DNA from: Auanema rhodensis
Taxonomy: Eukaryota > Animalia > Nematoda
NCBI GenBank assembly: GCA_964057225.1
Contig: OZ059895.1
Location: forward strand, 11,718,001-11,782,000
Direction of reading: 5' to 3'
Length of the DNA stretch: 64,000 nt
Under the pieces are notes generated by a model. It was not told where the DNA came from. It saw only the letters and a list, made by a program, of their open reading frames with translations, and did no database searches. The translations under genes were made by a program, and so were the position numbers. Positions 1 to 64,000 of this stretch are shown here, piece after piece (the stretch's first letter is position 1; the number at the start of each line of letters is the position of its first letter).

Positions 1-399
1 ATGTTTTCAATTTTCAAGCAGTTTTACTTAGATAGCTCAACCCAAGGCAGCAATTTATCTTCAAACTTAACTCTATCTTACAGTTTTAAACCATTAGTTA
101 ATGAACCATCATCTTACCTTTACTATTTCTATCTATTTCCTATCAAAACCAACTTTGTTCAAACACTATACAACTGAGAAGCCTTTTTTAATTTCTTGTA
201 TTTGGAGTTCATAAGATTTGATATCATTGAGGGATCCAGATAGAACGTGGAAAATTACATAACTAACATGAAATTGGGAAAAAATTATAACGAGGATAAG
301 TATGTTGAAACATTGAATATCAGATATTTTCGCTCAGGACCATACCACGTTAAAAGTACGGCATGCGGCTGATTTTCAATTTTAACTCTTCTGTAACAA
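1..399. repeat. Representative satellite monomer (this copy is 399 bp because of one extra T at about 305)
   Basis: The sequence from 1 recurs at 400. Counted 125/399 G+C overall, while the core at 331-371 is 23/41 G+C. Confidence 0.97.
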
Positions 400-3300
400 A
401 TGTTTTCAATTTTCAAGCAGTTTTACTTAGATAGCTCAACCCAAGGCAGCAAATTATCTTCAATCTTATTTCTATCTTACAGTTATAAACCAGTAGTGAA
501 TGAACCATCATCTTACCTTCACTGTTTCTATCTATTTTCTATCAAAAGAAACATTGTTTAAACACTATACAACTGTGACACCTTTTTTAATTTCTTGTAT
601 TTGGAGTTCATAAGATTTGATATCATCGAGGGATCCAGATAGAACGTGGAAAATTACATAACTAACATGAAATTGGGCAAAAACTATGACGAGGATAAGT
701 ATGTGAATCATTGAATATCAGATATTTTCGCTTAGGACCATACCACGTTGAAAGTACGCCATGCCGCTGATTTTCAATTTTAACTCTTTTGTAACAGATG
801 TTTTCAATTTTCAAGCAGTTTTACTTAGATAGCTCAACCCAAGGCAGCAAATTATCTTCAATATTATTTCTATCTCACAGTTATAAACCAATAGTTAATG
901 AACCATCATCTTACCCTTACCGTTTCTATCTATTTCCTATCGAAACCAACTTTGTTCAAAAACTATACAACTGTGAAACCTTTTTTAATTTCTTGTATTT
1001 GGAGCTCATAAGATTTGATATCATTGAGGGATCCAGATAGAACGTGGAAAATTACATAACTACCATGAAATTGGGAAAAAATTGTAACGAGGATAAGTAT
1101 GTAAATCAGTGAATATCAGATATTTTCGCTTAGGACCATACCACGTTAAAAGTATGGCATGCGGCTGATTTTCAATTTTAACTCTTCTGTAACAAATGTT
1201 TTCAATTTTCAAGCAGTTTTACTTAGATAGCTCAACCCAAGGCAGCAAATTATCTTCAATATTATTTCTATCTTACAGTTATAAACCAATAGTTAATTAA
1301 CCATCATCTTACCTTCACTGTTTCTATCTATTTCCTATCGAAAGCAACTTTGTTCAAACACTATACAACTGTGAAACCTTTTTTAATTTCTTGTATTTGG
1401 AGCTCATAAGATTTGATATCATTGAGGGATCCAGATAGAACGTGGAAAATTACATAACTAACATGAAATTGGGAAAAAATTATAACGAGGATAAGTATGT
1501 GAAACATTGAATATCAGATATTTTCGCTCAGGACCATACCACGTTAAAAGTACGGCATGCGGCTGATTTTCAATTTTAACTTTTCTGTAACAAATGTTTT
1601 CAATTTTCAAGCAGTTTTACTTAGATAGCTCAACCCAAGGCAGCAAATTATCTTCAATCTTACTTCTATCTTACAGTTGTAAACCAATAGTTAATGAACC
1701 ATCATCTTACCCTTACCGTTTCTATCTATTTCATATCGAAACCAACTTTGTTCAAAAACTATACAACTGTGAAACCTTTTTTAATTTCTTGTATTTGGAG
1801 CTCATAAGATTTGATATCATTAAGGGATCCAGATAGAACGTAGAAAATTACATAACTACCATGAAATTGGGAAAAAATTGTAACGAGGATAAGTATGTAA
1901 ATCATTGAATATCAGATATTTTCGCTTACGACCATACCACGTTGAAAGAATGCCATGCCGCTGATTTTCAATTTTAACTCTTCTGTAACGAATGTTTCCA
2001 ATTTTCAAGCAGTTTTACTTAGAAAGCTCAACCCAAGGCAGCAAATTATCTTCAATATTATTTCTATCTTACAGTTTTAAACCATTAGTTAATGAACCAT
2101 CATCTTACCTTTACTATTTCTATCTATTTCCTATTAAAACCAACTTTGTTCAAACACTATACAACTGAGAAGCCTTTTTTAATTTCTTGTATTTGGAGTT
2201 CATAAGATTTGATATCATTGAGGGATCCAGATAGAACGTGGAAAATTACATAACTAACATGAAATTGGGAAAAAATTATAACGAGGATAAGTATGTGAAA
2301 CATTGAATATCAGATATTTTCGCTTAGGACCATACGACGTTGAAAGTACGCCATGCCGCTGATTTTCAATTTTAACTCTTCTGTAACAAATGTTTTCAAT
2401 TTCCAAGCAGTTTTACTTAGATAGCTCAACCCAAGGCAGCAAATTATCTTCAATCTTATTTCTATCTTACAGTTATAAACCAGTAGTGAATGAACCATCA
2501 TCTTACCTTCACTGTTTCTATCTATTTCCTATCAAAAGAAACATTGTTTAAACACTATACAACTGTGAAACCTTTTTTAATTTCTTGTATTTGGAGATCA
2601 TAAGATTTGATATCATTGAGGGATCCAGATAGAACGTGGAAAATTACGTAACTAACATGAAATTGGAAAAAACTATAACGAGGATAAGTATGTGAATCAT
2701 TGAATATCAGATATTTTTGCTTAGGACCATACCACGTTGAAAGTACGCCATGCCGCTGAATTTCAATTTTAACTCTTTTGTAACAAATGTTTTCAATTTT
2801 CAAGCAGTTTTACTCAGATAGCTTAACCCAAGGCAGCAAATTATCTTCAATATTATTTCTATCTTACAGTTTTAAACCATTAGTTAATGAACCATCATCT
2901 TACCTTTACTATTTCTATCTATTTCCTATCAAAACCAACTTTGTTCAAACACTATACAACTGAGAAGCCTTTTTTAATTTCTTGTATTTGGAGTTCATAA
3001 GATTTGATATCATTGAGGGATCCAGATAGAACGTGGAAAATTACATAACTAACATGAAATTGGGGAAAAATTATAACGAGGATAAGTATGTGAAACATTG
3101 AATATCAGATATTTTCGCTTAGGACCATACGACGTTGAAAGTACGCCATGCCGCTGATTTTCAATTTTAACTCTTCTGTAACAAATGTTTTCAATTTCCA
3201 AGCAGTTTTACTTAGATAGCTCAACCCAAGGCAGCAAATTATCTTCAATCTTATTTCTATCTTACAGTTATAAACCAGTAGTGAATGAACCATCATCTTA

Positions 3301-3514
3301 CCTTTACTGTTTCTATCTATTTTCTATCAGAACAAATATTGTTCAAACACTATACAACTGTGAAACCTTTTTTAATTTCTTGTATTTGGAGCTCATAAGA
3401 TTTGATATCATTGAGAGATCCAGATACAACGTGGAAAATTACGTAACTAACATGAAATTGGGAAAAAATTATAACGAGGATAAGTATGTAAATCATTGAA
3501 TATCAGATATTTTC

Positions 3515-3551
3515 GCTTACGACCATATCACGTTGAAAGTACGCCATGCCG
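3515..3551 (+). pseudogene. 5S rRNA 5' fragment (nt about 1-37), nematode-like; a homologous segment is present in every monomer at about monomer position 331-367
   Basis: The sequence is GCTTACGACCATATCACGTTGAAAGTACGCCATGCCG. C. elegans 5S as recalled is GCTTACGACCATATCACGTTGAATGCACGCCATCCCG, giving 34/37 identity with the first 23 nt identical. Similarity begins exactly at 5S nt 1. The downstream part is degenerate, so this is not an intact 119-nt gene. Confidence 0.85.
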
Positions 3552-5099
3552 CTGATTTTCAATTTTAACTCTTCTGTAACGAATGTTTTCAATTTTCAAG
3601 CAGTTTTACTTTGAAAGCTCAACCCAAGGCAGCAAATTATCTTCAATATTATTTCTATCTTACAGTTATAAACCAATAGTTAATGAACCATCATCTTACC
3701 TTTACTGTTTCTATCTATTTCCTATCAAAAGCAACTTTGTTCAAACACTATACAACTGTGAAACCTTTTTTAATTTCTTGTATTTGGAGCTCATAAAATT
3801 TGATATTATTGAGGGATCCAGATAGAACGTGGAAAATTACATAACTAACATGAAATTGGGAAAAAATTATAACGAGGATAAGTATGTGAAACATTGAATA
3901 TCAGATATTTTCGCTCAGGACCATACCACGTTAAAAATACGGCATGCGGCTGATTTTCAATTTAAACTTTTCTGTAACAAATGTTTTCAATTTTCAAGCA
4001 GTTTTACTTAGATAGCTCAACCCAAGGCAGCAAATTATCTTCAATCTTACTTCTATCTTACAGTTATAAACCAATAGTGAATGAACCATCATCTTACCTT
4101 CACTGTTTCTATCTATTTTCTATCAAAAGAAACATTGTTTAAACACTATACAACTGTGACACCTTTTTTAATTTCTTGTATTTGGAGTTCGTAAGATTTG
4201 ATATCATCGAGGGATCCAGATAGAACGTGGAAAATTACATAACTAACATGAAATTGGGAAAAAATTATAACGAGGATAAGTATGTGAAACATTGAATATC
4301 AGATATTTTCGCTTAGGACCATACGACGTTGAAAGTACGCCATGCCGCTGATTTTCAATTTTAACTCTTCTGTAACAAATGTTTTCAATTTCCAAGCAGT
4401 TTTACTTAGATAGCTCAACCCAAGGCAGCAAATTATCTTCAATCTTATTTCTATCTTACAGTTATAAACCAGTAGTGAATGAACCATCATCTTACCTTCA
4501 CTGTTTCTATCTATTTCCTATCAAAAGAAACATTGTTTAAACACTATACAACTGTGAAACCTTTTTTAATTTCTTGTATTTGGAGCTCATAAGATTTGAT
4601 ATCATTGAGGGATCCAGATAGAACGTGGAAAATTACGTAACTAACATGAAATTGGAAAAAACTATAACGAGGATAAGTATGTGAATCATTGAATATCAGA
4701 TATTTTCGCTTAGGACCATACCACGTTGAAAGTACGCCATGCCGCTGAATTTCAATTTTAACTCTTTTGTAACAAATGTTTTCAATTTTCAAGCAGTTTT
4801 ACTCAGATAGCTTAACACAAGGCAGCAAATTATCTTCAATATTATTTCTATCTTACAGTTATAAACCAATGGTTAATGAACCATCATCATACCTTTACTG
4901 TTTCTATCTATTTTCTATCAGAACAAATATTGTTCAAACACTATACAACTGTGAAACCTTTTTTAATTTCTTGTATTTGGAGCTCATAAGATCTGATATC
5001 ATTGAGGGATCCAGATAGAACGTGGAAAATTACGTAACTAACATGAATGTGGGAAAAACTATAACGAGGATAAGTATGTGAATCATTGAATATCAGATA

Positions 5100-7800
5100 T
5101 TTTCGCTTAGGACCATACCACGTTTAAAGTTCGCCATGCCGCTGATTTTCAATTTTAACTCTTCTGTAACAAATGTTTTCAATTTTCAAGCAGTTTTACT
5201 TAGATAGCTCAACCCAAGGCAGCAATTTATCTTCAAACTTAACTCTATTTTACAGTTTTAAACCATTAGTTAATGAACCATCATCTTACCTTTACTATTT
5301 CTATCTATTTCCTATCAAAACCAACTTTGTTCAAACACTATACAACTGAGAAGCCTTTTTTAATTTCTTGTATTTGGAGTTCATAAGATTTGATATCATT
5401 GAGGGATCCAGATAGAACGTGGAAAATTACATAACTAACATGAAATTGGGAAAAAATTATAACGAGGATAAGTATGTGAAACATTGAATATCAGATATTT
5501 TCGCTCAAGACCATACCACGTTAAAAGTACGGCATGCGGCTGATTTTCAATTTTAACTTTTCTGTAACAAATGTTTTCAATTTTCAAGCAGTTTTACTTA
5601 GATAGCTCAACCCAAGGCAGCAAATTATCTCTAATCTTACTTCTATCTTACAGTTGTAAACCAGTAGTGAATGAACCATCATCTTACCTTCACTGTTTCT
5701 ATCTTTTTTCTATCAAAAGAAACATTGTTTAAACACTATACAACTGTGACACCTTTTTTAATTTCTTGTATTTGGAGTTCATAAGATTTGATATCATCGA
5801 GGGATCCAGATAGAACGTGGAAAATTACATAACTAACATGAAATTGGGAAAAAATTATAACGAAGATAAGTATGTGAAACATTGAATATCAGATATTTTC
5901 GCTTAGGACCATACGACGTTGAAAGTACGCCATGCCGCTGATTTTCAATTTTAACTCTTCTGTAACAAATGTTTTCAATTTCCAAGCAGTTCTACTTAGA
6001 TAGCTCAACCCAAGGCAGCAAATTATCTTCAATCTTATTTCTATCTTACAGTTATAAACCAGTAGTGATTGAACCATCATCTTACCTTCACTGTTTCTAT
6101 CTATTCCCTATCGAAAGAAACATTGTTTAAACACTATACAACTGTGAAACCTTTTTTAATTTCTTGTATTTGGAGATCATAAGATTTGATATCATTGAGG
6201 GATCCAGATAGAACGTGGAAAATTACGTAACTAACATGAAATTGGAAAAAACTATAACGAGGATAAGTATGTGAATCATTGAATATCAGATATTTTCGCT
6301 TAGGACCATACCACGTTGAAAGTACGCCATGCCGCTGAATTTCAATTTTAACTCTTTTGTAACAAATGTTTTCAATTTTCAAGCAGTTTTACTCAGATAG
6401 CTTAACCCAAGGCAGCAAATTATCTTCAATATTATTTCTATCTTACAGTTATAAACCAATATTTAATGAACCATCATCTTACCTTTACTGTTTCTATCTA
6501 TTTTCTATCAGAACAAATATTGTTCAAACACTATACAACTGTGAAACCTTTTTTGATTTCTTGTATTTGGAGCTCATAAAATTTGATATCATTGAGGGAT
6601 TCAGATAGAACGTGGAAAATTACATAACTAACATGAAATTGGGAAAAAATTATAACGAGGATAAGTATGTGAATCATTGAATATCAGATATTTTCGCTTA
6701 GGACCATACCACGTTTAAAGTTCGCCATGCCGCTGATTTTCAATTTTAACTCTTCTGTAACAAATGTTTTCAATTTTCAAGCAGTTTTACTTAGATAGCT
6801 CAACCCAAGGCAGCAATTTATCTTCAAACTTAACTCTATTTTACAGTTTTAAACCATTAGTTAATGAACCATCATCTTACCTTTACTATTTCTATCTATT
6901 TCCTATCAAAACCAACTTTGTTCAAACACTATACAACTGAGAAGCCTTTTTTAATTTCTTGTATTTGGAGTTCATAAGATTTGATATCATTGAGGGATCC
7001 AGATAGAACGTGGAAAATTACATAACTAACATGAAATTGGGAAAAAATTATAACGAGGATAAGTATGTGAAACATTGAATATCAGATATTTTCGCTCAAG
7101 ACCATACCACGTTAAAAGTACGGCATGCGGCTGATTTTCAATTTTAACTTTTCTGTAACAAATGTTTTCAATTTTCAAGCAGTTTTACTTAGATAGCTCA
7201 ACCCAAGGCAGCAAATTATCTCTAATCTTACTTCTATCTTACAGTTGTAAACCAGTAGTGAATGAACCATCATCTTACCTTCACTGTTTCTATCTTTTTT
7301 CTATCAAAAGAAACATTGTTTAAACACTATACAACTGTGACACCTTTTTTAATTTCTTGTATTTGGAGTTCATAAGATTTGATATCATCGAGGGATCCAG
7401 ATAGAACGTGGAAAATTACATAACTAACATGAAATTGGGAAAAAATTATAACGAAGATAAGTATGTGAAACATTGAATATCAGATATTTTCGCTTAGGAC
7501 CATACGACGTTGAAAGTACGCCATGCCGCTGATTTTCAATTTTAACTCTTCTTTAACAAATGTTTTCAATTTCCAAGCAGTTCTACTTAGATAGCTCAAC
7601 CCAAGGCAGCAAATTATCTTCAATCTTATTTCTATCTTACAGTTATAAACCAGTAGTGATTGAACCATCATCTTACCTTCACTGTTTCTATCTATTCCCT
7701 ATCGAAAGAAACATTGTTTAAACACTATACAACTGTGAAACCTTTTTTAATTTCTTGTATTTGGAGATCATAAGATTTGATATCATTGAGGGATCCAGAT
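5100..7800. repeat. 4-monomer (1591 bp) higher-order repeat nested in the 13-mer, copy set 1
   Basis: Markers GTTTAAAGTTCG, CTCAAGACC, TCTCTAATC, CGAAGATAAG, GTTCTAC and GTGATTGAA repeat at +1591 (ORFs 5889/7480). Confidence 0.88.
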
Positions 7801-8685
7801 AGAATTCGGAAAATTACGTAACTAACATGAAATTGGGAAAAAATTATAACGAGGATAAGTATGTGAATCATTGAATATCAGATATTTTTGCTTAGGACCA
7901 TACCACGTTGAAAGTACGCCATGCCGCTGAATTTCAATTTTAACTCTTTTGTAACAAATGTTTTCAATTTTCAAGCAGTTTTACTCAGATAGCTTAACCC
8001 AAGGCAGCAAATTATCTTCAATATTATTTCTATCTTACAGTTTTAAACCATTAGTTAATGAACCATCATCTTACCTTTACTATTTCTATCTATTTCCTAT
8101 CAAAACCAACTTTGTTCAAACACTATACAACTGAGAAGCCTTTTTTAATTTCTTGTATTTGGAGTTCATAAGATTTGATATCATTGAGGGATCCAGATAG
8201 AACGTGGAAAATTACATAACTAACATGAAATTGGGGAAAAATTATAACGAGGATAAGTATGTGAAACATTGAATATCAGATATTTTCGCTTAGGACCATA
8301 CGACGTTGAAAGTACGCAATGCCGCTGATTTTCAATTTTAACTCTTCTGTAACAAATGTTTTCAATTTCCAAGCAGTTTTACTTAGATAGCTCAACCCAA
8401 GGCAGCAAATTATCTTCAATCTTATTTCTATCTTACAGTTATAAACCAGTAGTGAATGAACCATCATCTTACCTTTACTGTTTCTATCTATTTTCTATCA
8501 GAACAAATATTGTTCAAACACTATACAACTGTGAAACCTTTTTTAATTTCTTGTATTTGGAGCTCATAAGATTTGATATCATTGAGAGATCCAGATACAA
8601 CGTGGAAAATTACGTAACTAACATGAAATTGGGAAAAAATTATAACGAGGATAAGTATGTAAATCATTGAATATCCGATATTTTC

Positions 8686-8722
8686 GCTTACGACCATATC
8701 ACGTTGAAAGTACGCCATGCCG
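8686..8722 (+). pseudogene. 5S rRNA 5' fragment, 5S-like allele (duplicate of 3515-3551)
   Basis: Same 37-mer as 3515-3551, offset 5171 bp. Confidence 0.85.
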
Positions 8723-10269
8723 CTGATTTTCAATTTTAACTCTTCTGTAACGAATGTTTTCAATTTTCAAGCAGTTTTACTTTGAAAGCTCAACCCAAGG
8801 CAGCAAATTATCTTCAATATTATTTCTATCTTACAGTTATAAACCAATAGTTAATGAACCATCATCTTACCTTTACTGTTTCTATCTATTTCCTATCAAA
8901 AGCAACTTTGTTCAAACACTATACAACTGTGAAACCTTTTTTAATTTCTTGTATTTGGAGCTCATAAAATTTGATATTATTGAGGGATCCAGATAGAACG
9001 TGGAAAATTACATAACTAACATGAAATTGGGAAAAAATTATAACGAGGATAAGTATGTGAAACATTGAATATCAGATATTTTCGCTCAGGACCATACCAC
9101 GTTAAAAATACGGCATGCGGCTGATTTTCAATTTAAACTTTTCTGTAACAAATGTTTTCAATTTTCAAGCAGTTTTACTTAGATAGCTCAACCCAAGGCA
9201 GCAAATTATCTTCAATCTTACTTCTATCTTACAGTTATAAACCAATAGTGAATGAACCATCATCTTACCTTCACTGTTTCTATCTATTTTCTATCAAAAG
9301 AAACATTGTTTAAACACTATACAACTGTGACACCTTTTTTAATTTCTTGTATTTGGAGTTCGTAAGATTTGATATCATCGAGGGATCCAGATAGAACGTG
9401 GAAAATTACATAACTAACATGAAATTGGGAAAAAATTATAACGAGGATAAGTATGTGAAACATTGAATATCAGATATTTTCGCTTAGGACCATACGACGT
9501 TGAAAGTACGCCATGCCGCTGATTTTCAATTTTAACTCTTCTGTAACAAATGTTTTCAATTTCCAAGCAGTTTTACTTAGATAGCTCAACCCAAGGCAGC
9601 AAATTATCTTCAATCTTATTTCTATCTTACAGTTATAAACCAGTAGTGAATGAACCATCATCTTACCTTCACTGTTTCTATCTATTTCCTATCAAAAGAA
9701 ACATTGTTTAAACACTATACAACTGTGAAACCTTTTTTAATTTCTTGTATTTGGAGCTCATAAGATTTGATATCATTGAGGGATCCAGATAGAACGTGGA
9801 AAATTACGTAACTAACATGAAATTGGAAAAAACTATAACGAGGATAAGTATGTGAATCATTGAATATCAGATATTTTCGCTTAGGACCATACCACGTTGA
9901 AAGTACGCCATGCCGCTGAATTTCAATTTTAACTCTTTTGTAACAAATGTTTTCAATTTTCAAGCAGTTTTACTCAGATAGCTTAACACAAGGCAGCAAA
10001 TTATCTTCAATATTATTTCTATCTTACAGTTATAAACCAATGGTTAATGAACCATCATCATACCTTTACTGTTTCTATCTATTTTCTATCAGAACAAATA
10101 TTGTTCAAACACTATACAACTGTGAAACCTTTTTTAATTTCTTGTATTTGGAGCTCATAAGATCTGATATCATTGAGGGATCCAGATAGAACGTGGAAAA
10201 TTACGTAACTAACATGAATGTGGGAAAAACTATAACGAGGATAAGTATGTGAATCATTGAATATCAGAT

Positions 10270-13200
10270 ATTTTCGCTTAGGACCATACCACGTTTAAAG
10301 TTCGCCATGCCGCTGATTTTCAATTTTAACTCTTCTGTAACAAATGTTTTCAATTTTCAAGCAGTTTTACTTAGATAGCTCAACCCAAGGCAGCAATTTA
10401 TCTTCAAACTTAACTCTATTTTACAGTTTTAAACCATTAGTTAATGAACCATCATCTTACCTTTACTATTTCTATCTATTTCCTATCAAAACCAACTTTG
10501 TTCAAACACTATACAACTGAGAAGCCTTTTTTAATTTCTTGTATTTGGAGTTCATAAGATTTGATATCATTGAGGGATCCAGATAGAACGTGGAAAATTA
10601 CATAACTAACATGAAATTGGGAAAAAATTATAACGAGGATAAGTATGTGAAACATTGAATATCAGATATTTTCGCTCAAGACCATACCACGTTAAAAGTA
10701 CGGCATGCGGCTGATTTTCAATTTTAACTTTTCTGTAACAAATGTTTTCAATTTTCAAGCAGTTTTACTTAGATAGCTCAACCCAAGGCAGCAAATTATC
10801 TCTAATCTTACTTCTATCTTACAGTTGTAAACCAGTAGTGAATGAACCATCATCTTACCTTCACTGTTTCTATCTTTTTTCTATCAAAAGAAACATTGTT
10901 TAAACACTATACAACTGTGACACCTTTTTTAATTTCTTGTATTTGGAGTTCATAAGATTTGATATCATCGAGGGATCCAGATAGAACGTGGAAAATTACA
11001 TAACTAACATGAAATTGGGAAAAAATTATAACGAAGATAAGTATGTGAAACATTGAATATCAGATATTTTCGCTTAGGACCATACGACGTTGAAAGTACG
11101 CCATGCCGCTGATTTTCAATTTTAACTCTTCTGTAACAAATGTTTTCAATTTCCAAGCAGTTCTACTTAGATAGCTCAACCCAAGGCAGCAAATTATCTT
11201 CAATCTTATTTCTATCTTACAGTTATAAACCAGTAGTGATTGAACCATCATCTTACCTTCACTGTTTCTATCTATTCCCTATCGAAAGAAACATTGTTTA
11301 AACACTATACAACTGTGAAACCTTTTTTAATTTCTTGTATTTGGAGATCATAAGATTTGATATCATTGAGGGATCCAGATAGAACGTGGAAAATTACGTA
11401 ACTAACATGAAATTGGAAAAAACTATAACGAGGATAAGTATGTGAATCATTGAATATCAGATATTTTCGCTTAGGACCATACCACGTTGAAAGTACGCCA
11501 TGCCGCTGAATTTCAATTTTAACTCTTTTGTAACAAATGTTTTCAATTTTCAAGCAGTTTTACTCAGATAGCTTAACCCAAGGCAGCAAATTATCTTCAA
11601 TATTATTTCTATCTTACAGTTATAAACCAATATTTAATGAACCATCATCTTACCTTTACTGTTTCTATCTATTTTCTATCAGAACAAATATTGTTCAAAC
11701 ACTATACAACTGTGAAACCTTTTTTGATTTCTTGTATTTGGAGCTCATAAAATTTGATATCATTGAGGGATTCAGATAGAACGTGGAAAATTACATAACT
11801 AACATGAAATTGGGAAAAAATTATAACGAGGATAAGTATGTGAATCATTGAATATCAGATATTTTCGCTTAGGACCATACCACGTTTAAAGTTCGCCATG
11901 CCGCTGATTTTCAATTTTAACTCTTCTGTAACAAATGTTTTCAATTTTCAAGCAGTTTTACTTAGATAGCTCAACCCAAGGCAGCAATTTATCTTCAAAC
12001 TTAACTCTATTTTACAGTTTTAAACCATTAGTTAATGAACCATCATCTTACCTTTACTATTTCTATCTATTTCCTATCAAAACCAACTTTGTTCAAACAC
12101 TATACAACTGAGAAGCCTTTTTTAATTTCTTGTATTTGGAGTTCATAAGATTTGATATCATTGAGGGATCCAGATAGAACGTGGAAAATTACATAACTAA
12201 CATGAAATTGGGAAAAAATTATAACGAGGATAAGTATGTGAAACATTGAATATCAGATATTTTCGCTCAAGACCATACCACGTTAAAAGTACGGCATGCG
12301 GCTGATTTTCAATTTTAACTTTTCTGTAACAAATGTTTTTAATTTTCAAGCAGTTTTACTTAGATAGCTCAACCCAAGGCAGCAAATTATCTCTAATCTT
12401 ACTTCTATCTTACAGTTGTAAACCAGTAGTGAATGAACCATCATCTTACCTTCACTGTTTCTATCTTTTTTCTATCAAAAGAAACATTGTTTAAACACTA
12501 TACAACTGTGACACCTTTTTTAATTTCTTGTATTTGGAGTTCATAAGATTTGATATCATCGAGGGATCCAGATAGAACGTGGAAAATTACATAACTAACA
12601 TGAAATTGGGAAAAAATTATAACGAAGATAAGTATGTGAAACATTGAATATCAGATATTTTCGCTTAGGACCATACGACGTTGAAAGTACGCCATGCCGC
12701 TGATTTTCAATTTTAACTCTTCTTTAACAAATGTTTTCAATTTCCAAGCAGTTCTACTTAGATAGCTCAACCCAAGGCAGCAAATTATCTTCAATCTTAT
12801 TTCTATCTTACAGTTATAAACCAGTAGTGATTGAACCATCATCTTACCTTCACTGTTTCTATCTATTCCCTATCGAAAGAAACATTGTTTAAACACTATA
12901 CAACTGTGAAACCTTTTTTAATTTCTTGTATTTGGAGATCATAAGATTTGATATCATTGAGGGATCCAGATAGAACGTGGAAAATTACGTAACTAACATG
13001 AAATTGGAAAAAACTATAACGAGGATAAGTATGTGAATCATTGAATATCAGATATTTTCGCTTAGGACCATACCACGTTGAAAGTACGCCATGCCGCTGA
13101 ATTTCAATTTTAACTCTTTTGTAACAAATGTTTTCAATTTTCAAGCAGTTTTACTCAGATAGCTTAACCCAAGGCAGCAAATTATCTTCAATATTATTTC

Positions 13201-13350
13201 TATCTTACAGTTATAAACCAATATTTAATGAACCATCATCTTACCTTTACTGTTTCTATCTATTTTCTATCAGAACAAATATTGTTCAAACACTATACAA
13301 CTGTGAAACCTTTTTTGATTTCTTGTATTTGGAGCTCATAAAATTTGATA
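10270..13350. repeat. 4-monomer (1591 bp) higher-order repeat, copy set 2
   Basis: ORF pairs 11060/12651, 11305/12896 and 11537/13128 are all offset by 1591. Confidence 0.88.
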
Positions 13351-50205: not shown

Positions 50206-53200
50206 CAGTAGTGAATGAACCATCATCTTACCTTCACTGTTTCTATCTATTTCCTATCAAAAGAAACATTGTTTAAACACTATACAACTGTGACACCTTT
50301 TTTAATTTCTTGTATTTGGAGTTCATAAGATTTGATATCATCGAGGGATCCAGATAGAACGTGGAAAATTACATAACTAACATGAAATTGGGAAAAAATT
50401 ATAACGAGGATAAGTATGTGAAACATTGAATATCAGATATTTTCGCTTAGGACCATACGACGTTGAAAGTACGCCTTGCCGCTGATTTTCAATTTTAACT
50501 CTTCTGTAACAAATGTTTCCAATTTCCAAGCAGTTTTACTTAGATAGCTCAACCCAAGGCAGCAAATTATCTTCAATCTTATTTCTATCTTACAGTTATA
50601 AACCAGTAGTGAATGAACCATCATCTTACCTTCACTGTTTCTATCTATTTCCTATCAAAAGAAACATTGTTTAAACACTATACAACTGTGAAACCTTTTT
50701 TAATTTCTTGTATTTGGAGATCATAAGATTTGATATCATTGAGGGATCCAGATAGAACGTGGAAAATTACGTAACTAACATGAAATTGGAAAAAACTATA
50801 ACGAGGATAAGTATGTGAATCAATGAATATCAGATATTTTCGCTTAGGACCATACCACGTTGAAAGTACGCCATGCCGCTGAATTTCAATTTTAACTCTT
50901 TTGTAACAAATGTTTTCAATTTTCAAGCAGTTTTACTCAGATAGCTTAACCCAAGGCAGCAAATTATCTTCAATATTATTTCTATCTTACAGTTATAAAC
51001 CAATGGTTAATGAACCATCATCTTACCCTTACCGTTTCTATCTATTTCCTATCAAAAGCAACTTTGTTCAAACACTATACAACTGTGAAACCTTTTTTAA
51101 TTTCTTGTATTTGGAGCTCATAAGATTTGATATCATTGAGGGATCCAGATAGAACGTGGAAAATTACATAACTAACATGAAATTGGGAAAAAATTATAAC
51201 GAGGATAAGTATGTGAAACATTGAATATCAGATATTTTCGCCTAGGACCATAGCACGTTGAAAGTACGCCATGCCGCTGATTTTCAATTTTAACTCTTTT
51301 GTAACAAATGTTTTCAATTTTTAAGCAGTTTTACTTAGATAGCTCAACCCAAGGCAGCAAATTATCTTCAATATTATTTCTATCTTACAGTTATAAACCA
51401 GTAGTGAATGAACGATCATCTTACCCTTACCGTTTCTATCTATTCCCTATCGAAACCAACTTTGTTCAAAAACTATACAACTGTGAAACCTTTTTTAATT
51501 TCTTGTATTTGGAGCTCATAAGATTTGATATCATTGAGGGATCCAGATAGAACGTGGAAAATTACGTAACTAACATGAAATTGGAAGAAACTATAACGAG
51601 GATAAGTATGTGAATCATTGAATATCAGATATTTTCGCTTAGGACCATACCACGTTGAAAGTACGCCATGCCGCTGATTTTCAATTTTAACTCTTCTGTA
51701 TTAAATGTTTTCAATTTTCAAGCAGTTTTACTCAGATAGCTTAACCCAAGGCAGCAAATTATCTTCAATATTATTTTTATCTTACAGTTATAAACCAATA
51801 GTTAATGAACCATCATCTTACCTTTACTGTTTCTATCTATTTCCTATCGAAAGCAACTTTGTTCAAACACTATACAACTGTGAAACCTTTTTTAATTTCT
51901 TGTATTTGGAGCTCATAAGATTTGATATCATTGAGGGATCCAGATAGAACGTGGAAAATTACGTAACTAACATGAAATTGGAAGAAACTATAACGAGGAT
52001 AAGTATGTGAATCATTGAATATCAGATATTTTCGCTTAGGACCATACCACGTTGAAAGTACGCCATGCCGCTGATTTTCAATTTTAACTCTTCTGTATTA
52101 AATGTTTTCAATTTTCAAGCAGTTTTACTCAGATAGCTTAACCCAAGGCAGCAAATTATCTTCAATATTATTTTTATCTTACAGTTATAAACCAATAGTT
52201 AATGAACCATCATCTTACCTTTACTGTTTCTATCTATTTCCTATCGAAAGCAACTTTGTTCAAACACTATACAACTGTGAAACCTTTTTTAATTTCTTGT
52301 ATTTGGAGCTCATAAGATTTGATATCATTGAGGGATCCAGATAGAACGTGGAAAATTACGTAACTAACATGAAATTGGAAAAAACTATAACGAGGATAAG
52401 TATGTAAATCATTGAATATCAGATATTTTCGCTTACGACCATACCACGTTGAAAGTACGCCATGCCGCTGATTTTCAATTTTAACTCTTTTGAAACAAAT
52501 GTTTTCAATTTTTAAGCAGTTTTACTTAGATAGCTCAACCCAAGGCAGCAAATTATCTTCAATCTTTTTTCTATCTTACAGTTATAAACCAGTAGTGAAT
52601 GAACCATCATCTTACCTTTACTATTTCTATCTATTTCTTATCAGAACCAACTTTGTTCAAACACTATACAACTGAGAAGCCTTTTTTAATTTCTTGTATT
52701 TGGAGCTCATAAGATTTGATATCATTGAGGGATCCAGATAGAACGTGGAAAATTACATAACTAGCATGAAATTGGGAAAAAATTATAACGAGGATAAGTA
52801 TGTGAAACATTGAATATCAGATATTTTCGCTTAGGACCATACCACGTTAAAAGTACGGCATGCGGCTGATTTTCAATTTTAACTCTTCTGTAACAAATGT
52901 TTTCAATTTTCAAGCAGTTTTACTTAGATAGCTCAACCCAAGGCAGCAAATTATCTTCAATCTTATTTCTCTCTTACAGTTATAAACCAGTAGTGAATGA
53001 ACCATCATCTTACCTTCACTGTTTCTATCTATTTTCTATCAAAAGAAACATTGTTTAAACACTATACAACTGTGAAACCTTTTTTAATTTCTTGTATTTG
53101 GAGCTCATAAGATTTGATATCATTGAGGGATCCAGATAGAACGTGGAAAATTACATAACTAACATGAAATTGAGAAAAAATTATAACGAGGATAAGTATG

Positions 53201-56200
53201 TGAAATATTGAATATCAGATATTTTCGCTTAGGACCATACGACGTTGAAAGTACGCCATGCCGCTGATTTTTAATTTTATATCTTCTGTAACAAATGTTT
53301 TCAATTTCCAAGCAGTTTTACTTAGATAGCTCAACCCAAGGCAGCAAATTATCTTCAATCTTATTTCTATCTTACAGTTATAAACCAGTATTGAATGAAC
53401 CATCATCTTACTTTCACTGTTTCTATCTATTTCCTATCAAAAGAAACATTGTTTAAACACTATACAACTGTGAAACCTTTTTTAATTTCTTGTATTTGGA
53501 GATCATAAGATTTGATATCATTGAGGGATCCAGATAGAACGTGGAAAATTACGTAACTAACATGAAATTGGAAAAAACTATAACGAGGATAAGTATGTGA
53601 ATCAATGAATATCAGATATTTTCGCTTAGGACCATACCACGTTGAAAGTACGCCATGCCGCTGAATTTCAATTTTAACTCTTTTGTAACAAATGTTTTCA
53701 ATTTTCAAGCAGTTTTACTCAGATAGCTTAACCCAAGGCAGCAAATTATCTTCAATATTATTTCTATCTTACAGTTATAAACCAATAGTTATTGAACCAT
53801 CATCTTACCTTTACTGTTTCTATCTATTTCCTATCGAAATCAACTTTGTTCAAACACTATACAACTGTGAAACCTTTTTTAATTTCTTGTATTTGGAGCT
53901 CATAAGATTTGATATCATCGAGGGATCCAGATAGAACGTGGAAAATTACATAACTAACTTGAAATTGGGAAAAAATATAACGAGGATAAGTATGTGAAAC
54001 ATTGAATATCAGATATTTTCGCTTAGGACCATACCACGTTAAAAGTACGGCATGCGGCTGATTTTCAATTTTAACTCTTCTGTAACAAATGTTTTCAATT
54101 TTCAAGCAGTTTTACTTAGATAGCTCAACCCAAGGCAGCAAATTATCTTCAATCTTATTTCTCTCTTACAGTTATAAACCAGTAGTGAATGAACCATCAT
54201 CTTACCTTCACTGTTTCTATCTATTTTCTATCAAAAGAAACATTGTTTAAACACTATACAACTGTGAAACCTTTTTTAATTTCTTGTATTTGGAGATCAT
54301 AAGATTTGATATCATTGAGGGATCCAGATAGAACGTGGAAAATTACGTAACTAACATGAAATTGGAAAAAACTATAACGAGGATAAGTATGTGAATCAAT
54401 GAATATCAGATATTTTCGCTTAGGACCATACCACGTTGAAAGTACGCCATGCCGCTGAATTTCAATTTTAACTCTTTTGTAACAAATGTTTTCAATTTTC
54501 AAGCAGTTTTACTCAGATAGCTTAACCCAAGGCAGCAAATTATCTTCAATATTATTTCTATCTTACAGTTATAAACCAATAGTTATTGAACCATCATCTT
54601 AGCTTTACTGTTTCTATCTATTTCCTATCGAAATCAACTTTGTTCAAACACTATACAACTGTGAAACCTTTTTTAATTTCTTGTATTTGGAGCTCATAAG
54701 ATTTGATATCATCGAGGGATCCAGATAGAACGTGGAAAATTACATAACTAACTTGAAATTGGGAAAAAATATAACGAGGATAAGTATGTGAAACATTGAA
54801 TATCAGATATTTTCGCTTAGGACCACACCACGTTGAAAGTACGCCATGCCGCTGAATTTCAATTTTAACTCTTTTGTAACAAATGTTTTCAATTTTTAAG
54901 CAGTTTTACTCAGATAGCTTAACCCAAGGCAGCAAATTATCTTCAATATTATTTCTATCGTACAGTTATAAACCAATAGTTAATGAACCATCATCTTACC
55001 TTTACTGTTTCTATCTATTTCCTATCGAAAGCAACTTTGTTCAAACACTATACAACTGTGGAACCTTTTTTAATTTCTTGTATTTGGAGCTCATAAGATT
55101 TGATATCATTGAGGGATCCAGATAGAACGTGGAAAATTACATAACTAGCATGAAATTGGGAAAAAATTATAACGAGGATAAGTATGTGAAACATTGAATA
55201 TCAGATATTTTCGCTTAGGACCATACCACGTTAAAAGTACGGCATGCGGCTGATTTTCAATTTTAACTCTTCTGTAACAAATGTTTTCAATTTTCAAGCA
55301 GTTTTACTTAGATAGCTCAACCCAAGGCAGCAAATTATCTTCAATCTTATTTCTCTCTTACAGTTATAAACCAGTAGTGAATGAACCATCATCTTACCTT
55401 CACTGTTTCTATCTATTTTCTATCAAAAGAAACATTGTTTAAACACTATACAACTGTGAAACCTTTTTTAATTTCTTGTATTTGGAGCTCATAAGATTTG
55501 ATATCATTGAGGGATCCAGATAGAACGTGGAAAATTACATAACTAACATGAAATTGAGAAAAAATTATAACGAGGATAAGTATGTGAAACATTGAATATC
55601 AGATATTTTCGCTTAGGACCATACGACGTTGAAAGTACGCCATGCCGCTGATTTTTAATTTTATATCTTCTGTAACAAATGTTTTCAATTTCCAAGCAGT
55701 TTTACTTAGATAGCTCAACCCAAGGCAGCAAATTATCTTCAATCTTATTTCTATCTTACAGTTATAAACCAGTATTGAATGAACCATCATCTTACTTTCA
55801 CTGTTTCTATCTATTTCCTATCAAAAGAAACATTGTTTAAACACTATACAACTGTGAAACCTTTTTTAATTTCTTGTATTTGGAGATCATAAGATTTGAT
55901 ATCATTGAGGGATCCAGATAGAACGTGGAAAATTACGTAACTAACATGAAATTGGAAAAAACTATAACGAGGATAAGTATGTGAATCAATGAATATCAGA
56001 TATTTTCGCTTAGGACCATACCACGTTGAAAGTACGCCATGCCGCTGAATTTCAATTTTAACTCTTTTGTAACAAATGTTTTCAATTTTCAAGCAGTTTT
56101 ACTCAGATAGCTTAACCCAAGGCAGCAAATTATCTTCAATATTATTTCTATCTTACAGTTATAAACCAATAGTTATTGAACCATCATCTTACCTTTACTG

Positions 56201-56472
56201 TTTCTATCTATTTCCTATCGAAATCAACTTTGTTCAAACACTATACAACTGTGAAACCTTTTTTAATTTCTTGTATTTGGAGCTCATAAGATTTGATATC
56301 ATCGAGGGATCCAGATAGAACGTGGAAAATTAGATAACTAACTTGAAATTGGGAAAAAATATAACGAGGATAAGTATGTGAAACATTGAATATCAGATAT
56401 TTTCGCTTAGGACCACACCACGTTGAAAGTACGCCATGCCGCTGAATTTCAATTTTAACTCTTTTGTAACAA

Positions 56473-59400
56473 ATGTTTTCAATTTTTAAGCAGTTTTACT
56501 CAGATAGCTTAACCCAAGGCAGCAAATTATCTTCAATATTATTTCTATCTTACAGTTATAAACCAATAGTTAATGAACCATCATCTTACCTTTACTGTTT
56601 CTATCTATTTCCTATCGAAAGCAACTTTGTTCAAACACTATACAACTGTGGAACCTTTTTTAATTTCTTGTATTTGGAGCTCATAAAATTTGATTTCATC
56701 GAGGGATCCAGATAGAACGTGGAAAATTACATAACTAACATGAAATTGGGAAAAATTATAACGAGGATAAGTATGTGAAACATTGAATATCAGATATTTT
56801 CGCTTAGGACTATACGACGTTGAAAGTACGCCATGCCGCTGATTTTCAATTTTAACTCTTCTGTAACAAATGTTTTCAATTTCCAAGCAGTTTTACTTAG
56901 ATAGCTCAACCCAAGGCAGCAAATTATCTTCAATCTTATTTCTATCTTACAGTTATAAACCAGTAGTGAATGAACCATTATCTTACCTTCACTGTTTCTA
57001 TCTATTTCGTATCAAAAGAAACATTGTTTAAACACTATACAACTGTGAAACCTTTTTTAATTTCTTGTATTTGGAGATCATAAGATTTGATATCATTGAG
57101 GGATCCAGATAGAACGTGGAAAATTACGTAACTAACATGAAATTGGAAAAAACTATAACGAGGATAAGTATGTGAATCATTGAATATCAGATATTTTCGC
57201 TTAGGACCATACCACGTTGAAAGTACGCCATGCCGCTGAATTTCAATTTTAACTCTTTTGTAACAAATGTTTTCAATTTCCAAGCAGTTTTACTCAGATA
57301 GCTTAACCCAAGGCAGCAAATTATCTTCAATATTATTTCTATCTTACAGTTATAAACCAATAGTTAATGAACCATCATCTTACCTTTACTGTTTCTATCT
57401 ATTTCCTATCGAAAGCAACTTTGTTCAAACACTATACAACTGTGGAACCTTTTTTATTTTCTTGTATTTGGAGCTCATAAAATTTGATATCATAGAGGGA
57501 TCCAGATAGAACGTGGAAAATTACATAACTAACATGAAATTGGGAAAAAATTATAACGAGGATAAGTATGTGAAACATTGAATATCAGATATTTTCGCTT
57601 AGGACTATACGACGTTGAAAGTACGCCATGCCGCTGATTTTCAATTTTAACTCTTCTGTAACAAATGTTTTCAATTTCCAAGCAGTTTTACTTAGATAGC
57701 TCAACCCAAGGCAGCAAATAATCTTCAATCTTATTTCTATCTTACAGTTATAAACCAGTAGTGAATGAACCATCATCTTACCTTTACTATTTCTATCTAT
57801 TTCTTATCAAAACCAACTTTGTTCAAACACTATACAACTGAGAAGCCTTTTTTAATTTCTTGTATTTGTAGCTCATAAGATTTGATATCATTGAGGGATC
57901 CAGATAGAACGTGGAAAATTACGTAACTAACATGAAATTGGAAAAAACTATAACGAGGATAAGTATGTGAATCAATGAATATCTGATATTTTCGCTTAGG
58001 ACCATACCACGTTGAAAGTACGCCATGCCGCTGAATTTCAATTTTAACTCTTTTGTAACAAATGTTTTCAATTTTTAAGCAGTTTTACTTAGATAGCTCA
58101 ACCCAAGGCAGCAAATTATCTTCAATCTTTTTTCTATCTTACAGTTATAAACCAGTAGTGAATGAACCATCATCTTACCTTTACTATTTCTATCTATTTC
58201 TTATCAAAACCAACTTTGTTCAAACACTATACAACTGAGAAGCCTTTTTTAATTTCTTGTATTTGGAGCTCATAAGATTTGATATCATTGAGGGATCCAG
58301 ATAGAACGTGGAAAATTACATAACTAGCATGAAATTGGGAAAAAATTATAACGAGGATAAGTATGTGAAACATTGAATATCAGATATTTTCGCTTAGGAC
58401 CATACCACGTTAAAAGTACGGCATGCGGCTGATTTTCAATTTTAACTCTTCTGTAACAAATGTTTTCAATTTTCAAGCAGTTTTACTTAGATAGCTCAAC
58501 CCAAGGCAGCAAATTATCTTCAATCTTATTTCTCTCTTACAGTTATAAACCAGTAGTGAATGAACCATCATCTTACCTTCACTGTTTCTATCTATTTTCT
58601 ATCAAAAGAAACATTGTTTAAACACTATACAACTGTGAAACCTTTTTTAATTTCTTGTATTTGGAGCTCATAAGATTTGATATCATTGAGGGATCCAGAT
58701 AGAACGTGGAAAATTACATAACTAACATGAAATTGAGAAAAAATTATAACGAGGATAAGTATGTGAAACATTGAATATCAGATATTTTCGCTTAGGACCA
58801 TACGACGTTGAAAGTACGCCATGCCGCTGATTTTTAATTTTATATCTTCTGTAACAAATGTTTTCAATTTCCAAGCAGTTTTACTTAGATAGCTCAACCC
58901 AAGGCAGCAAATTATCTTCAATCTTATTTCTATCTTACAGTTATAAACCAATAGTTAATGAACCATCATCTTACCTTTACTGTTTCTATCTATTTCCTAT
59001 CGAAAGCAACTTTGTTCAAACACTATACAACTGTGGAACCTTTTTTATTTTCTTGTATTTGGAGCTCATAAAATTTGATATCATCGAGGGATCCAGATAG
59101 AACGTGGAAAATTAGATAACTAACTTGAAATTGGGAAAAAATATAACGAGGATAAGTATGTGAAACATTGAATATCAGATATTTTCGCTTAGGACCACAC
59201 CACGTTGAAAGTACGCCATGCCGCTGAATTTCAATTTTAACTCTTTTGTAACAAATGTTTTCAATTTTTAAGCAGTTTTACTCAGATAGCTTAACCCAAG
59301 GCAGCAAATTATCTTCAATATTATTTCTATCTTACAGTTATAAACCAATAGTTAATGAACCATCATCTTACCTTTACTGTTTCTATCTATTTCCTATCGA

Positions 59401-62400
59401 AAGCAACTTTGTTCAAACACTATACAACTGTGGAACCTTTTTTAATTTCTTGTATTTGGAGCTCATAAAATTTGATTTCATCGAGGGATCCAGATAGAAC
59501 GTGGAAAATTACATAACTAACATGAAATTGGGAAAAATTATAACGAGGATAAGTATGTGAAACATTGAATATCAGATATTTTCGCTTAGGACTATACGAC
59601 GTTGAAAGTACGCCATGCCGCTGATTTTCAATTTTAACTCTTCTGTAACAAATGTTTTCAATTTCCAAGCAGTTTTACTTAGATAGCTCAACCCAAGGCA
59701 GCAAATTATCTTCAATCTTATTTCTATCTTACAGTTATAAACCAGTAGTGAATGAACCATTATCTTACCTTCACTGTTTCTATCTATTTCGTATCAAAAG
59801 AAACATTGTTTAAACACTATACAACTGTGAAACCTTTTTTAATTTCTTGTATTTGGAGATCATAAGATTTGATATCATTGAGGGATTTAGATAGAACGTG
59901 GAAAATTACATAACTAACATGAAATTGGGAAAAAATTATAACGAGGATAAGTATGTGAAACATTGAATATCAGATATTTTCGCTTAGGACTATACGACGT
60001 TGAAAGTACGCCATGCCGCTGATTTTCAATTTTAACTCTTCTGTAACAAATGTTTTCAATTTCCAAGCAGTTTTACTTAGATAGCTCAACCCAAGGCAGC
60101 AAATAATCTTCAATCTTATTTCTATCTTACAGTTATAAACCAGTAGTGAATGAACCATCATCTTACCTTTACTATTTCTATCTATTTCTTATCAAAACCA
60201 ACTTTGTTCAAACACTATACAACTGAGAAGCCTTTTTTAATTTCTTGTATTTGTAGCTCATAAGATTTGATATCATTGAGGGATCCAGATAGAACGTGGA
60301 AAATTACGTAACTAACATGAAATTGGAAAAAACTATAACGAGGATAAGTATGTGAATCAATGAATATCTGATATTTTCGCTTAGGACCATACCACGTTGA
60401 AAGTACGCCATGCCGCTGAATTTCAATTTTAACTCTTTTGTAACAAATGTTTTCAATTTTTAAGCAGTTTTACTTAGATAGCTCAACCCAAGGCAGCAAA
60501 TTATCTTCAATCTTTTTTCTATCTTACAGTTATAAACCAGTAGTGAATGAACCATCATCTTACCTTTACTATTTCTATCTATTTCTTATCAAAACCAACT
60601 TTGTTCAAACACTATACAACTGAGAAGCCTTTTTTAATTTCTTGTATTTGGAGCTCATAAGATTTGATATCATTGAGGGATCCAGATAGAACGTGGAAAA
60701 TTACATAACTAGCATGAAATTGGGAAAAAATTATAACGAGGATAAGTATGTGAAACATTGAATATCAGATATTTTCGCTTAGGACCATACCACGTTAAAA
60801 GTACGGCATGCGGCTGATTTTCAATTTTAACTCTTCTGTAACAAATGTTTTCAATTTTCAAGCAGTTTTACTTAGATAGCTCAACCCAAGGCAGCAAATT
60901 ATCTTCAATCTTATTTCTCTCTTACAGTTATAAACCAGTAGTGAATGAACCATCATCTTACCTTCACTGTTTCTATCTATTTTCTATCAAAAGAAACATT
61001 GTTTAAACACTATACAACTGTGAAACCTTTTTTAATTTCTTGTATTTGGAGCTCATAAGATTTGATATCATTGAGGGATCCAGATAGAACGTGGAAAATT
61101 ACATAACTAACATGAAATTGAGAAAAAATTATAACGAGGATAAGTATGTGAAACATTGAATATCAGATATTTTCGCTTAGGACCATACGACGTTGAAAGT
61201 ACGCCATGCCGCTGATTTTTAATTTTATATCTTCTGTAACAAATGTTTTCAATTTCCAAGCAGTTTTACTTAGATAGCTCAACCCAAGGCAGCAAATTAT
61301 CTTCAATCTTATTTCTATCTTACAGTTATAAACCAATAGTTAATGAACCATCATCTTACCTTTACTGTTTCTATCTATTTCCTATCGAAAGCAACTTTGT
61401 TCAAACACTATACAACTGTGGAACCTTTTTTATTTTCTTGTATTTGGAGCTCATAAAATTTGATATCATCGAGGGATCCAGATAGAACGTGGAAAATTAG
61501 ATAACTAACTTGAAATTGGGAAAAAATATAACGAGGATAAGTATGTGAAACATTGAATATCAGATATTTTCGCTTAGGACCACACCACGTTGAAAGTACG
61601 CCATGCCGCTGAATTTCAATTTTAACTCTTTTGTAACAAATGTTTTCAATTTTTAAGCAGTTTTACTCAGATAGCTTAACCCAAGGCAGCAAATTATCTT
61701 CAATATTATTTCTATCTTACAGTTATAAACCAATAGTTAATGAACCATCATCTTACCTTTACTGTTTCTATCTATTTCCTATCGAAAGCAACTTTGTTCA
61801 AACACTATACAACTGTGGAACCTTTTTTAATTTCTTGTATTTGGAGCTCATAAAATTTGATTTCATCGAGGGATCCAGATAGAACGTGGAAAATTACATA
61901 ACTAACATGAAATTGGGAAAAATTATAACGAGGATAAGTATGTGAAACATTGAATATCAGATATTTTCGCTTAGGACTATACGACGTTGAAAGTACGCCA
62001 TGCCGCTGATTTTCAATTTTAACTCTTCTGTAACAAATGTTTTCAATTTCCAAGCAGTTTTACTTAGATAGCTCAACCCAAGGCAGCAAATTATCTTCAA
62101 TCTTATTTCTATCTTACAGTTATAAACCAGTAGTGAATGAACCATTATCTTACCTTCACTGTTTCTATCTATTTCGTATCAAAAGAAACATTGTTTAAAC
62201 ACTATACAACTGTGAAACCTTTTTTAATTTCTTGTATTTGGAGATCATAAGATTTGATATCATTGAGGGATCCAGATAGAACGTGGAAAATTACGTAACT
62301 AACATGAAATTGGAAAAAACTATAACGAGGATAAGTATGTGAATCATTGAATATCAGATATTTTCGCTTAGGACCATACCACGTTGAAAGTACGCCATGC

Positions 62401-64000
62401 CGCTGAATTTCAATTTTAACTCTTTTGTAACAAATGTTTTCAATTTCCAAGCAGTTTTACTCAGATAGCTTAACCCAAGGCAGCAAATTATCTTCAATAT
62501 TATTTCTATCTTACAGTTATAAACCAATAGTTAATGAACCATCATCTTACCTTTACTGTTTCTATCTATTTCCTATCGAAAGCAACTTTGTTCAAACACT
62601 ATACAACTGTGGAACCTTTTTTATTTTCTTGTATTTGGAGCTCATAAAATTTGATATCATAGAGGGATCCAGATAGAACGTGGAAAATTACATAACTAAC
62701 ATGAAATTGGGAAAAAATTATAACGAGGATAAGTATGTGAAACATTGAATATCAGATATTTTCGCTTAGGACTATACGACGTTGAAAGTACGCCATGCCG
62801 CTGATTTTCAATTTTAACTCTTCTGTAACAAATGTTTTCAATTTCCAAGCAGTTTTACTTAGATAGCTCAACCCAAGGCAGCAAATAATCTTCAATCTTA
62901 TTTCTATCTTACAGTTATAAACCAGTAGTGAATGAACCATCATCTTACCTTTACTATTTCTATCTATTTCTTATCAAAACCAACTTTGTTCAAACACTAT
63001 ACAACTGAGAAGCCTTTTTTAATTTCTTGTATTTGTAGCTCATAAGATTTGATATCATTGAGGGATCCAGATAGAACGTGGAAAATTACGTAACTAACAT
63101 GAAATTGGAAAAAACTATAACGAGGATAAGTATGTGAATCAATGAATATCTGATATTTTCGCTTAGGACCATACCACGTTGAAAGTACGCCATGCCGCTG
63201 AATTTCAATTTTAACTCTTTTGTAACAAATGTTTTCAATTTTTAAGCAGTTTTACTTAGATAGCTCAACCCAAGGCAGCAAATTATCTTCAATCTTTTTT
63301 CTATCTTACAGTTATAAACCAGTAGTGAATGAACCATCATCTTACCTTTACTATTTCTATCTATTTCTTATCAAAACCAACTTTGTTCAAACACTATACA
63401 ACTGAGAAGCCTTTTTTAATTTCTTGTATTTGGAGCTCATAAGATTTGATATCATTGAGGGATCCAGATAGAACGTGGAAAATTACATAACTAGCATGAA
63501 ATTGGGAAAAAATTATAACGAGGATAAGTATGTGAAACATTGAATATCAGATATTTTCGCTTAGGACCATACCACGTTAAAAGTACGGCATGCGGCTGAT
63601 TTTCAATTTTAACTCTTCTGTAACAAATGTTTTCAATTTTCAAGCAGTTTTACTTAGATAGCTCAACCCAAGGCAGCAAATTATCTTCAATCTTATTTCT
63701 CTCTTACAGTTATAAACCAGTAGTGAATGAACCATCATCTTACCTTCACTGTTTCTATCTATTTTCTATCAAAAGAAACATTGTTTAAACACTATACAAC
63801 TGTGAAACCTTTTTTAATTTCTTGTATTTAGAGCTCATAAGATTTGATATCATTGAGGGATCCAGATAGAACGTGGAAAATTACATAACTAGCATGAAAT
63901 TGGGAAAAAATTATAACGAGGATAAGTATGTGAAACATTGAATATCAGATATTTTCGCTTAGGACCATACGACGTTGAAAGTACGCCATGCCGCTGATTT
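56473..64000. repeat. Higher-order repeat with units of 7, 6 and (truncated) 7 monomers
   Basis: The marker monomer (TGTGGAACC, TTGATTTCATC) starts at 56473, 59255 (+2782) and 61640 (+2385). Pair 57267/62434 (+5167). Confidence 0.92.

Follow-up and report, generated by a model that had tools for sequence, protein, structure and literature searches.

The stretch analysed here, 64,000 nucleotides of contig OZ059895.1 in assembly GCA_964057225.1 of the nematode Auanema rhodensis (A. rhodense below), is referred to as the window. It corresponds to positions 11,718,001 to 11,782,000 of the contig, which we call C3 (C3:11,718,001-11,782,000), the host genome assembly being designated G000. The window was found to consist of a single satellite with a unit of 398 bp. 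This satellite is very probably a gene-less derivative of the chromosome-specific 5S ribosomal DNA (rDNA) repeat of the host, produced by a deletion of 131 bp and followed by amplification.

A single tandem array covers positions 1 to 64,000 on the forward strand, in one orientation throughout and without any interruption, and it continues past the window on either side. Tandem Repeats Finder gave a period of 398 bp, 160.9 copies, 94% matches and 0% indels. When the array was divided at a fuzzy anchor, 161 unit starts were obtained, with a spacing of 398 bp in 105 cases and of 397 bp in 55 cases. Identity of the monomers to their consensus is 96.5% on average, and two monomers differ from each other by a mean of 5.3%. 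Higher-order repeats of 13, 7 and 6 monomers were detected, each local to a different part of the window, which we interpret as the trace of unequal crossing-over. The monomer at 3515-3912, which serves as an example below, has an identical copy 13 monomers downstream, at 8686-9083 (100% matches at C3:11721515 and C3:11726686). Only two open reading frames of at least 90 amino acids are present in the 64 kb; both are 104 amino acids long and they lie 13 monomers apart, which indicates that they are copies of one frame borne by the repeat.

The original prediction, made from the letters of the window, had placed a GC-rich head in every AT-rich monomer and had read it as nucleotides (nt) 1-37 of a 5S rRNA gene. 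Such a head, beginning GCTTA[C/G]GACCATA, was indeed present in 161 of 161 units, the GC content being 54.5% in the first 40 nt of the monomer versus 28.9% in the remainder. Using the 5S gene of the host itself as the reference (RF00001, 108.9 bits), we observed that the head matches 5S nt 1-33 at 28 to 33 of the 33 positions in all monomers. The predicted start, exactly at nt 1, was therefore correct, but the predicted end has to be moved: homology stops at nt 33, and what had been taken for nt 34-37 are flank bases of a second direct repeat, R2, which is described below. These bases, which come from the flank of R2 and read GCCG in the window and either GCAG or ACAG in sister arrays, have no significant similarity to 5S (p = 0.4). 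We also considered R2 as a longer, decayed copy of 5S, and found no homology beyond nt 33. The similarity of the head to 5S is well above that of dinucleotide-shuffled monomers, a comparison that the prediction had named as one that could refute it: the local alignment score is 32, compared to 7.4 +/- 1.0 and a maximum of 12 for 500 shuffles (z = 25.9).

Another check put forward, a cmscan search against RF00001, went the opposite way. No 5S was found in the window at the gathering score, in three monomers at E <= 10, or when the stretch was cut at the truncation point and a truncated match was allowed. The window thus does not reach the gathering score of 38 bits, compared to about 108 bits for the genes of the host, only nt 1-33 being left. 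This negative result does not refute a 5S head, because a stub of 33 nt is too short for the RF00001 model.

Intact 5S genes (about 108 bits in a search with RF00001) are located further along the contig of the window, at C3:12.09-13.46 Mb, that is, 0.3 to 1.7 Mb away. The functional 5S unit on C3 is 529 to 530 bp long. In the reference unit of 529 bp (L003:1501-2029, L003 being the array at ~12.09 Mb), the 119-nt 5S gene is followed by a TTTT terminator, about 11 nt, R2, and about 365 bp of AT-rich spacer, which ends in the 5' flank of the next 5S gene. Aligned to this unit over its full length, the satellite consensus shows 91.2% identity in 398 shared columns and a single gap of 131 bp. This bears out one of the origins named in the prediction, that of an amplified 5S rDNA unit, since the whole monomer is colinear with the 529-bp unit of the host except for the gap. 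The prediction had also suggested checking whether the rest of the monomer derives from the non-transcribed spacer, and the other ~365 bp are indeed spacer and 5S 5' flank.

The gap is bordered by direct repeats. R1 corresponds to 5S nt 1-33, and R2, at unit positions 131-163, is a partial second copy of it; the two share 24 identical nucleotides (5S nt 10-33), and over nt 5-33 they agree at 28 of 29 positions. In the short unit, the left side comes from R1 (the 5' flank and GCTTACGAC), while the right flank comes from R2 (GCAGCTGATTTTC). A hybrid of this kind is expected from recombination within the identical core, and the crossover is indeed placed within the 24 nt of nt 10-33. The 131-bp deletion took away 5S nt 34-119 together with the terminator and the flank to the left of R2. 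The short unit still has the start site and the 5' flank before it, 33 nt of 5S, four T in a row 42-45 nt downstream, and the spacer. Nucleotides 34-119 of 5S are missing from 161 of 161 monomers, and no full-length 5S is present in the window. The three properties that define a 5S rDNA-derived satellite are thus all found here: a tandem array, homology to the 5S gene and its spacer, and the fact that an intact 5S is no longer encoded.

The layout can be followed on the example monomer (3515-3912, forward strand), which the alignment of the consensus to the 529-bp unit identifies as a gene-less 5S rDNA unit. Its head, at 3515-3547, is host 5S rRNA nt 1-33 in the form of an R1 (left)/R2 (right) hybrid, the left flank and nt 1-9 being of the gene type. 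The junction flank that follows at 3548-3560, GCCGCTGATTTTC, is inherited from the downstream repeat R2, after which it is found in long units (positions 164-176), and it contains the run of four T, at 3556-3559. The former non-transcribed spacer then extends over 3561-3832, colinear with unit positions ~177-449. Finally, the segment at 3833-3912 is the former 5' flank of the 5S gene (about -80 to -1, colinear with ~450-529), which now precedes the next truncated head; it is the same flank as that upstream of the intact 5S genes of the array at ~12.09 Mb. All these features are on the forward strand.

5S genes have an internal promoter, located at about +50 to +97 and composed of box A, an intermediate element and box C. 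Given these textbook positions and the deletion of nt 34-119, the promoter is gone, and the satellite unit should no longer be a TFIIIA/RNA polymerase III (Pol III) gene.

With INTERMEDIATES preserved, the true 5S arrays were found to mix long and short units. Orders such as 529, 529, 399, 529 were observed at 12.09, 12.8, 12.9 and 13.05 Mb on C3, and at 10.1 Mb there are about two short units per long unit. Pure short arrays occupy 9.64-10.0 Mb, where the unit is 400-401 bp and about 90% identical to the window consensus, and also 11.24-11.80 Mb, a region that includes the window. Sister arrays of the satellite differ by 8 to 10%. A maximum likelihood tree was built on the shared spacer columns of 99 units. 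On this tree, units cluster by place and not by type, long or short. The window units form their own clade (99% support in the Shimodaira-Hasegawa-like approximate likelihood ratio test, SH-aLRT), while the clade of 9.7-10.1 Mb and that of 12-13 Mb (99-100% SH-aLRT) both contain long and short units; at least eight changes between the long and short states are required. The bases that follow GCCAT behave in the same way: ACAG on the left and GCAG on the right, in the R2 of long units and in short units alike, and GCCG in the window. This grouping by place implies either that the deletion recurred in each domain, or that exchange between neighbouring long and short units homogenises their spacers, and the data accommodate both possibilities.

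The 5S arrays also switch orientation along C3 (forward at 12.09-12.92 Mb, reverse at 13.04-13.22 Mb, forward again near 13.46 Mb), which implies that the block has undergone large inversions or contains inverted segmental duplications. At C3:~12,092,150 (L003:760-880), a 5S array borders at one of its edges on a (GA)n/AGAGAT microsatellite, beyond which the sequence is non-repetitive; the first unit at this edge starts part-way into the 5' flank.

To estimate the abundance of the satellite, unit starts were compared with gene bodies. The C3-type 5' flank joined to the gene start had 4,874 matches (pattern count, up to 3 mismatches), compared to 2,188 matches genome-wide for a 28-nt piece of the gene body (5S nt 25-52), of which at least 760 have a C1-type flank. 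It follows that no more than ~1,430 C3-type units contain a gene and that the short units number at least ~3,400, which amounts to ~1.4 Mb of satellite. About three quarters of the C3-type units are gene-less. Among the matches listed, which reach contigs C1 to C3, those to the C3-type pattern all fall on C3, C1 and C2 having none. The 5S genes of C1 (10.9-12.2 Mb) share with the C3 unit just the gene and ~14 nt downstream of it; their flanks are unrelated and R2 is missing. R2 can thus be considered as a derived feature that is specific to the C3-type unit, and this in turn indicates that the satellite descends from a C3-type unit.

As regards the other 5S genes, the C1 family comprises at least 760 intact-looking copies, often paired 360 bp apart, with a period of ~2.1-2.5 kb in the region that was sampled (C1:10.91-10.96 Mb). 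Among the RF00001 hits listed, the sole high-scoring one outside C3 is at G000:C8:10,319,125-10,319,243. The ~2,200 5S gene bodies appear to be concentrated in the central repeat blocks that have been published as eliminated.

A second satellite, with a unit of 246 bp (also a 491-bp dimer), was found at C3:10.7-10.8 Mb, and is about 90% identical to the 5S rDNA unit. Its monomer matches positions 65-310 of the 529-bp unit, a segment that runs from the 3' half of 5S through the terminator and R2 to ~150 bp into the spacer. Like the satellite of the window, it was cut from this unit and amplified into large arrays, but the segment and the breakpoints are not the same as those of the 398-bp satellite. 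The different breakpoints point to a separate birth event, so that at least two satellites have arisen from one rDNA unit.

We propose the following scenario for the window. Recombination between R1 and R2, either by unequal exchange or by intrachromatid pop-out, would remove 131 bp and leave a unit of 398-400 bp, made of the 5' flank of the gene, 5S nt 1-33, and the spacer; unequal crossing-over would then spread these short units into pure arrays like that of the window.

Several points weigh against this derivation. The polarity from long to short is argued from parsimony, as a working gene must come first, and parsimony is not proof; reciprocal exchange between short and long units can in fact move the cassette in either direction. 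A single origin with homogenisation and a recurrent deletion are both compatible with the data. The satellite may be transcriptionally silent. In public RNA runs carrying the same species label, which are small, consist of contigs only and weigh little, the contigs contain essentially no satellite words, and none of the contigs of one such run aligned to the satellite. Elimination of this exact block from somatic cells is probable from the published map of A. rhodense. Lastly, chromosome-specific central blocks may have a structural role, as the A. rhodense authors have speculated.

This last point requires a description of the genomic setting. The germline assembly of A. rhodense (180.9 Mb) is based on HiFi reads, most long reads mapping uniquely, and 61% of the genome is described as eliminated from the soma (bioRxiv 10.64898/2026.08.27.747507). 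According to the same source, each autosome has a central eliminated block of chromosome-specific repeats of 167-504 nt, germline-restricted 5S arrays exist, the central repeats may serve homolog recognition, and eliminated regions are seen as weakly selected, which lets repeats accumulate; a 5S rDNA origin is not stated in its main text for any of the autosomal-central (AC) repeats (bioRxiv 10.64898/2026.08.27.747507). The 28-nt AT-1 probe published for fluorescence in situ hybridization in A. rhodense has 138,553 matches in G000 (at most one mismatch), with a spacing of 176 bp from the very start of C1, in agreement with the nematode host that had been predicted. The window lies at the midpoint of C3 (24,040,024 bp), in a central repeat block whose beginning falls between 9.4 and 9.5 Mb and which extends to at least 13.46 Mb. 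Its position in a central block and its unit of 398 bp, within the range of 167-504 nt, are those of an autosomal-central repeat of A. rhodense, and the block that contains it is probably eliminated from somatic cells, judging from the published map. Other satellites are present in the C3 block, at 9.5 Mb and at 10.2-10.6 Mb, with a unit of 167/168 bp and higher-order periods of 336, 504 and 513 bp; they are unrelated to the 5S unit, and lie between the 5S-derived arrays.

That the array is kept for a chromosomal function, for example as a chromosome-specific central block for homolog recognition, would account for the restriction of the family to C3, among the matches listed, and for its location in the middle of a 24.04-Mb contig, and it is a role that the A. 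rhodense authors propose. Nevertheless, no sequence constraint was detected. The 5S head is slightly more variable than the rest of the monomer (4.1% versus 3.4% non-consensus bases), and no unusually conserved sub-window, such as a binding site or a promoter would leave, was found in the monomer, the least variable window of 20 columns having p = 0.29 by column permutation. Moreover, sister arrays are 8 to 10% different, the C3-only pattern comes from matches that cover part of the contigs, and an origin by deletion requires no function. We therefore regard a chromosomal function as quite unlikely, and the satellite as probably functionless.

The short units might alternatively still be Pol III templates, with the 5' flank driving the synthesis of an RNA of ~41-45 nt that ends at the run of four T and has some role in the germline. 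Each monomer does preserve the 5' flank of the gene and its precise start site, and TTTT follows 42-45 nt after the latter. On the other hand, the entire internal control region is deleted, substitutions in the head are at least as fast as in the spacer, with C6 of 5S replaced by G in the window consensus, and no sub-window is conserved; the contigs of the RNA runs, for the little they weigh, are devoid of the satellite. Such transcription is very unlikely. As 5S and SL1 genes are linked in some nematodes, other RNA genes were also considered: in the full unit, on both strands, 5S was the only family found at E <= 10, with no SL1 or other RNA gene in the spacer, and the monomers gave only chance-level matches to snoR17 (E = 1.2) and Ocean-V (E = 8.7).

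The prediction had left room for another origin, in which a 5S-headed short interspersed nuclear element (SINE) or a retro-pseudogene was captured and amplified into an array. The head begins exactly at 5S nt 1, as in 5S-derived SINEs. However, colinearity with the rDNA unit extends over the full 398 bp, including the 5' flank that precedes nt 1; the head ends at nt 33 and lacks the internal promoter that 5S-SINEs need; the copies are arranged strictly in tandem, keep the phase of the rDNA unit and, among the matches listed, all lie on C3; and there is no tail, A-rich or resembling that of a long interspersed nuclear element. Having neither an internal Pol III promoter, nor a tail, nor dispersed copies among the matches listed, the monomer cannot be assigned to the 5S-derived (SINE3-like) elements, and this origin, extremely unlikely, was discarded.

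The existence of the array is supported by independent contigs derived from Illumina reads. The satellite was found in the DNA runs of three studies, under three species labels. For two of the labels, thousands of short-read contigs align to it at very high word depth; one run of the third label contains mainly 5S genes of its own, with different flanks, and low-depth traces of the satellite. On window positions 3515-5900, this third-label run (X9) has high depth over the 5S head alone, and the loose ends of its contigs enter a slightly different 5S gene. Its low-depth contigs are identical to the satellite, and may reflect carry-over between the samples of one study or a low-copy presence. 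Although long tandem arrays are prone to assembly errors, a collapsed or mis-joined 5S rDNA is next to impossible, given the structured variation and local higher-order repeats of the monomers, the presence of the junction-bearing monomer at very high word depth in short-read contigs of three independent studies, and the published description of the assembly, according to which it was made from HiFi reads and most long reads could be mapped uniquely.

Satellites derived from 5S rDNA are already well known from frogs and fishes; no description of one in a nematode was found in the literature searched. In the wolf fish Hoplias malabaricus, 5SHindIII is a satellite composed of a truncated 5S gene and spacer-like sequence, with a centromeric location apart from the true 5S loci. 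The satellite of the window differs from it in lineage, truncation and location; here, parent and derivative are interspersed, and deletion between direct repeats can be read as the mechanism in the sequence itself. In hyloid frogs, PcP190 is a tandem 5S rDNA-derived satellite in which a segment is similar to the 5S transcribed region (PMC11675491). The A. rhodense satellite resembles PcP190, as described there, in being tandem, derived from 5S rDNA, and still provided with a recognisable 5S segment. However, PcP190 has a unit of ~190 bp, in which a 120-bp region resembling the complete 5S gene is combined with a hypervariable region, and it is old and spread across families, while the unit of A. 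rhodense is 398 bp long, combines nt 1-33 with the whole spacer, and is found beside the parent array. Being ~91% identical to the living rDNA unit, it is young by comparison. Within A. rhodense, the AC-I to AC-VI repeats are close counterparts: they belong to the same genome, and the satellite shares with them its place at the centre of an autosome-sized contig, a unit length within 167-504 nt and, among the matches listed, an apparent chromosome specificity. It differs from these repeats, as they are described in the main text of the publication, in that it has been traced to 5S rDNA.

The birth of this satellite is unusually legible, since the parent unit, the direct repeats that probably caused the deletion, the mixed arrays and the pure arrays are all present on one contig. 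The result provides an annotation for one large repeat block of A. rhodense, which the published map suggests to be germline-restricted, and it fits the published view that weak selection in eliminated regions lets repeats accumulate. One may go further and consider that a germline-only 5S cluster is decaying into chromosome-specific satellites, and that the block may have been co-opted as an identity tag for homolog recognition. We hold this broader proposal to be unlikely; if true, it would connect programmed elimination of DNA with the decay of rDNA and the birth of satellites.

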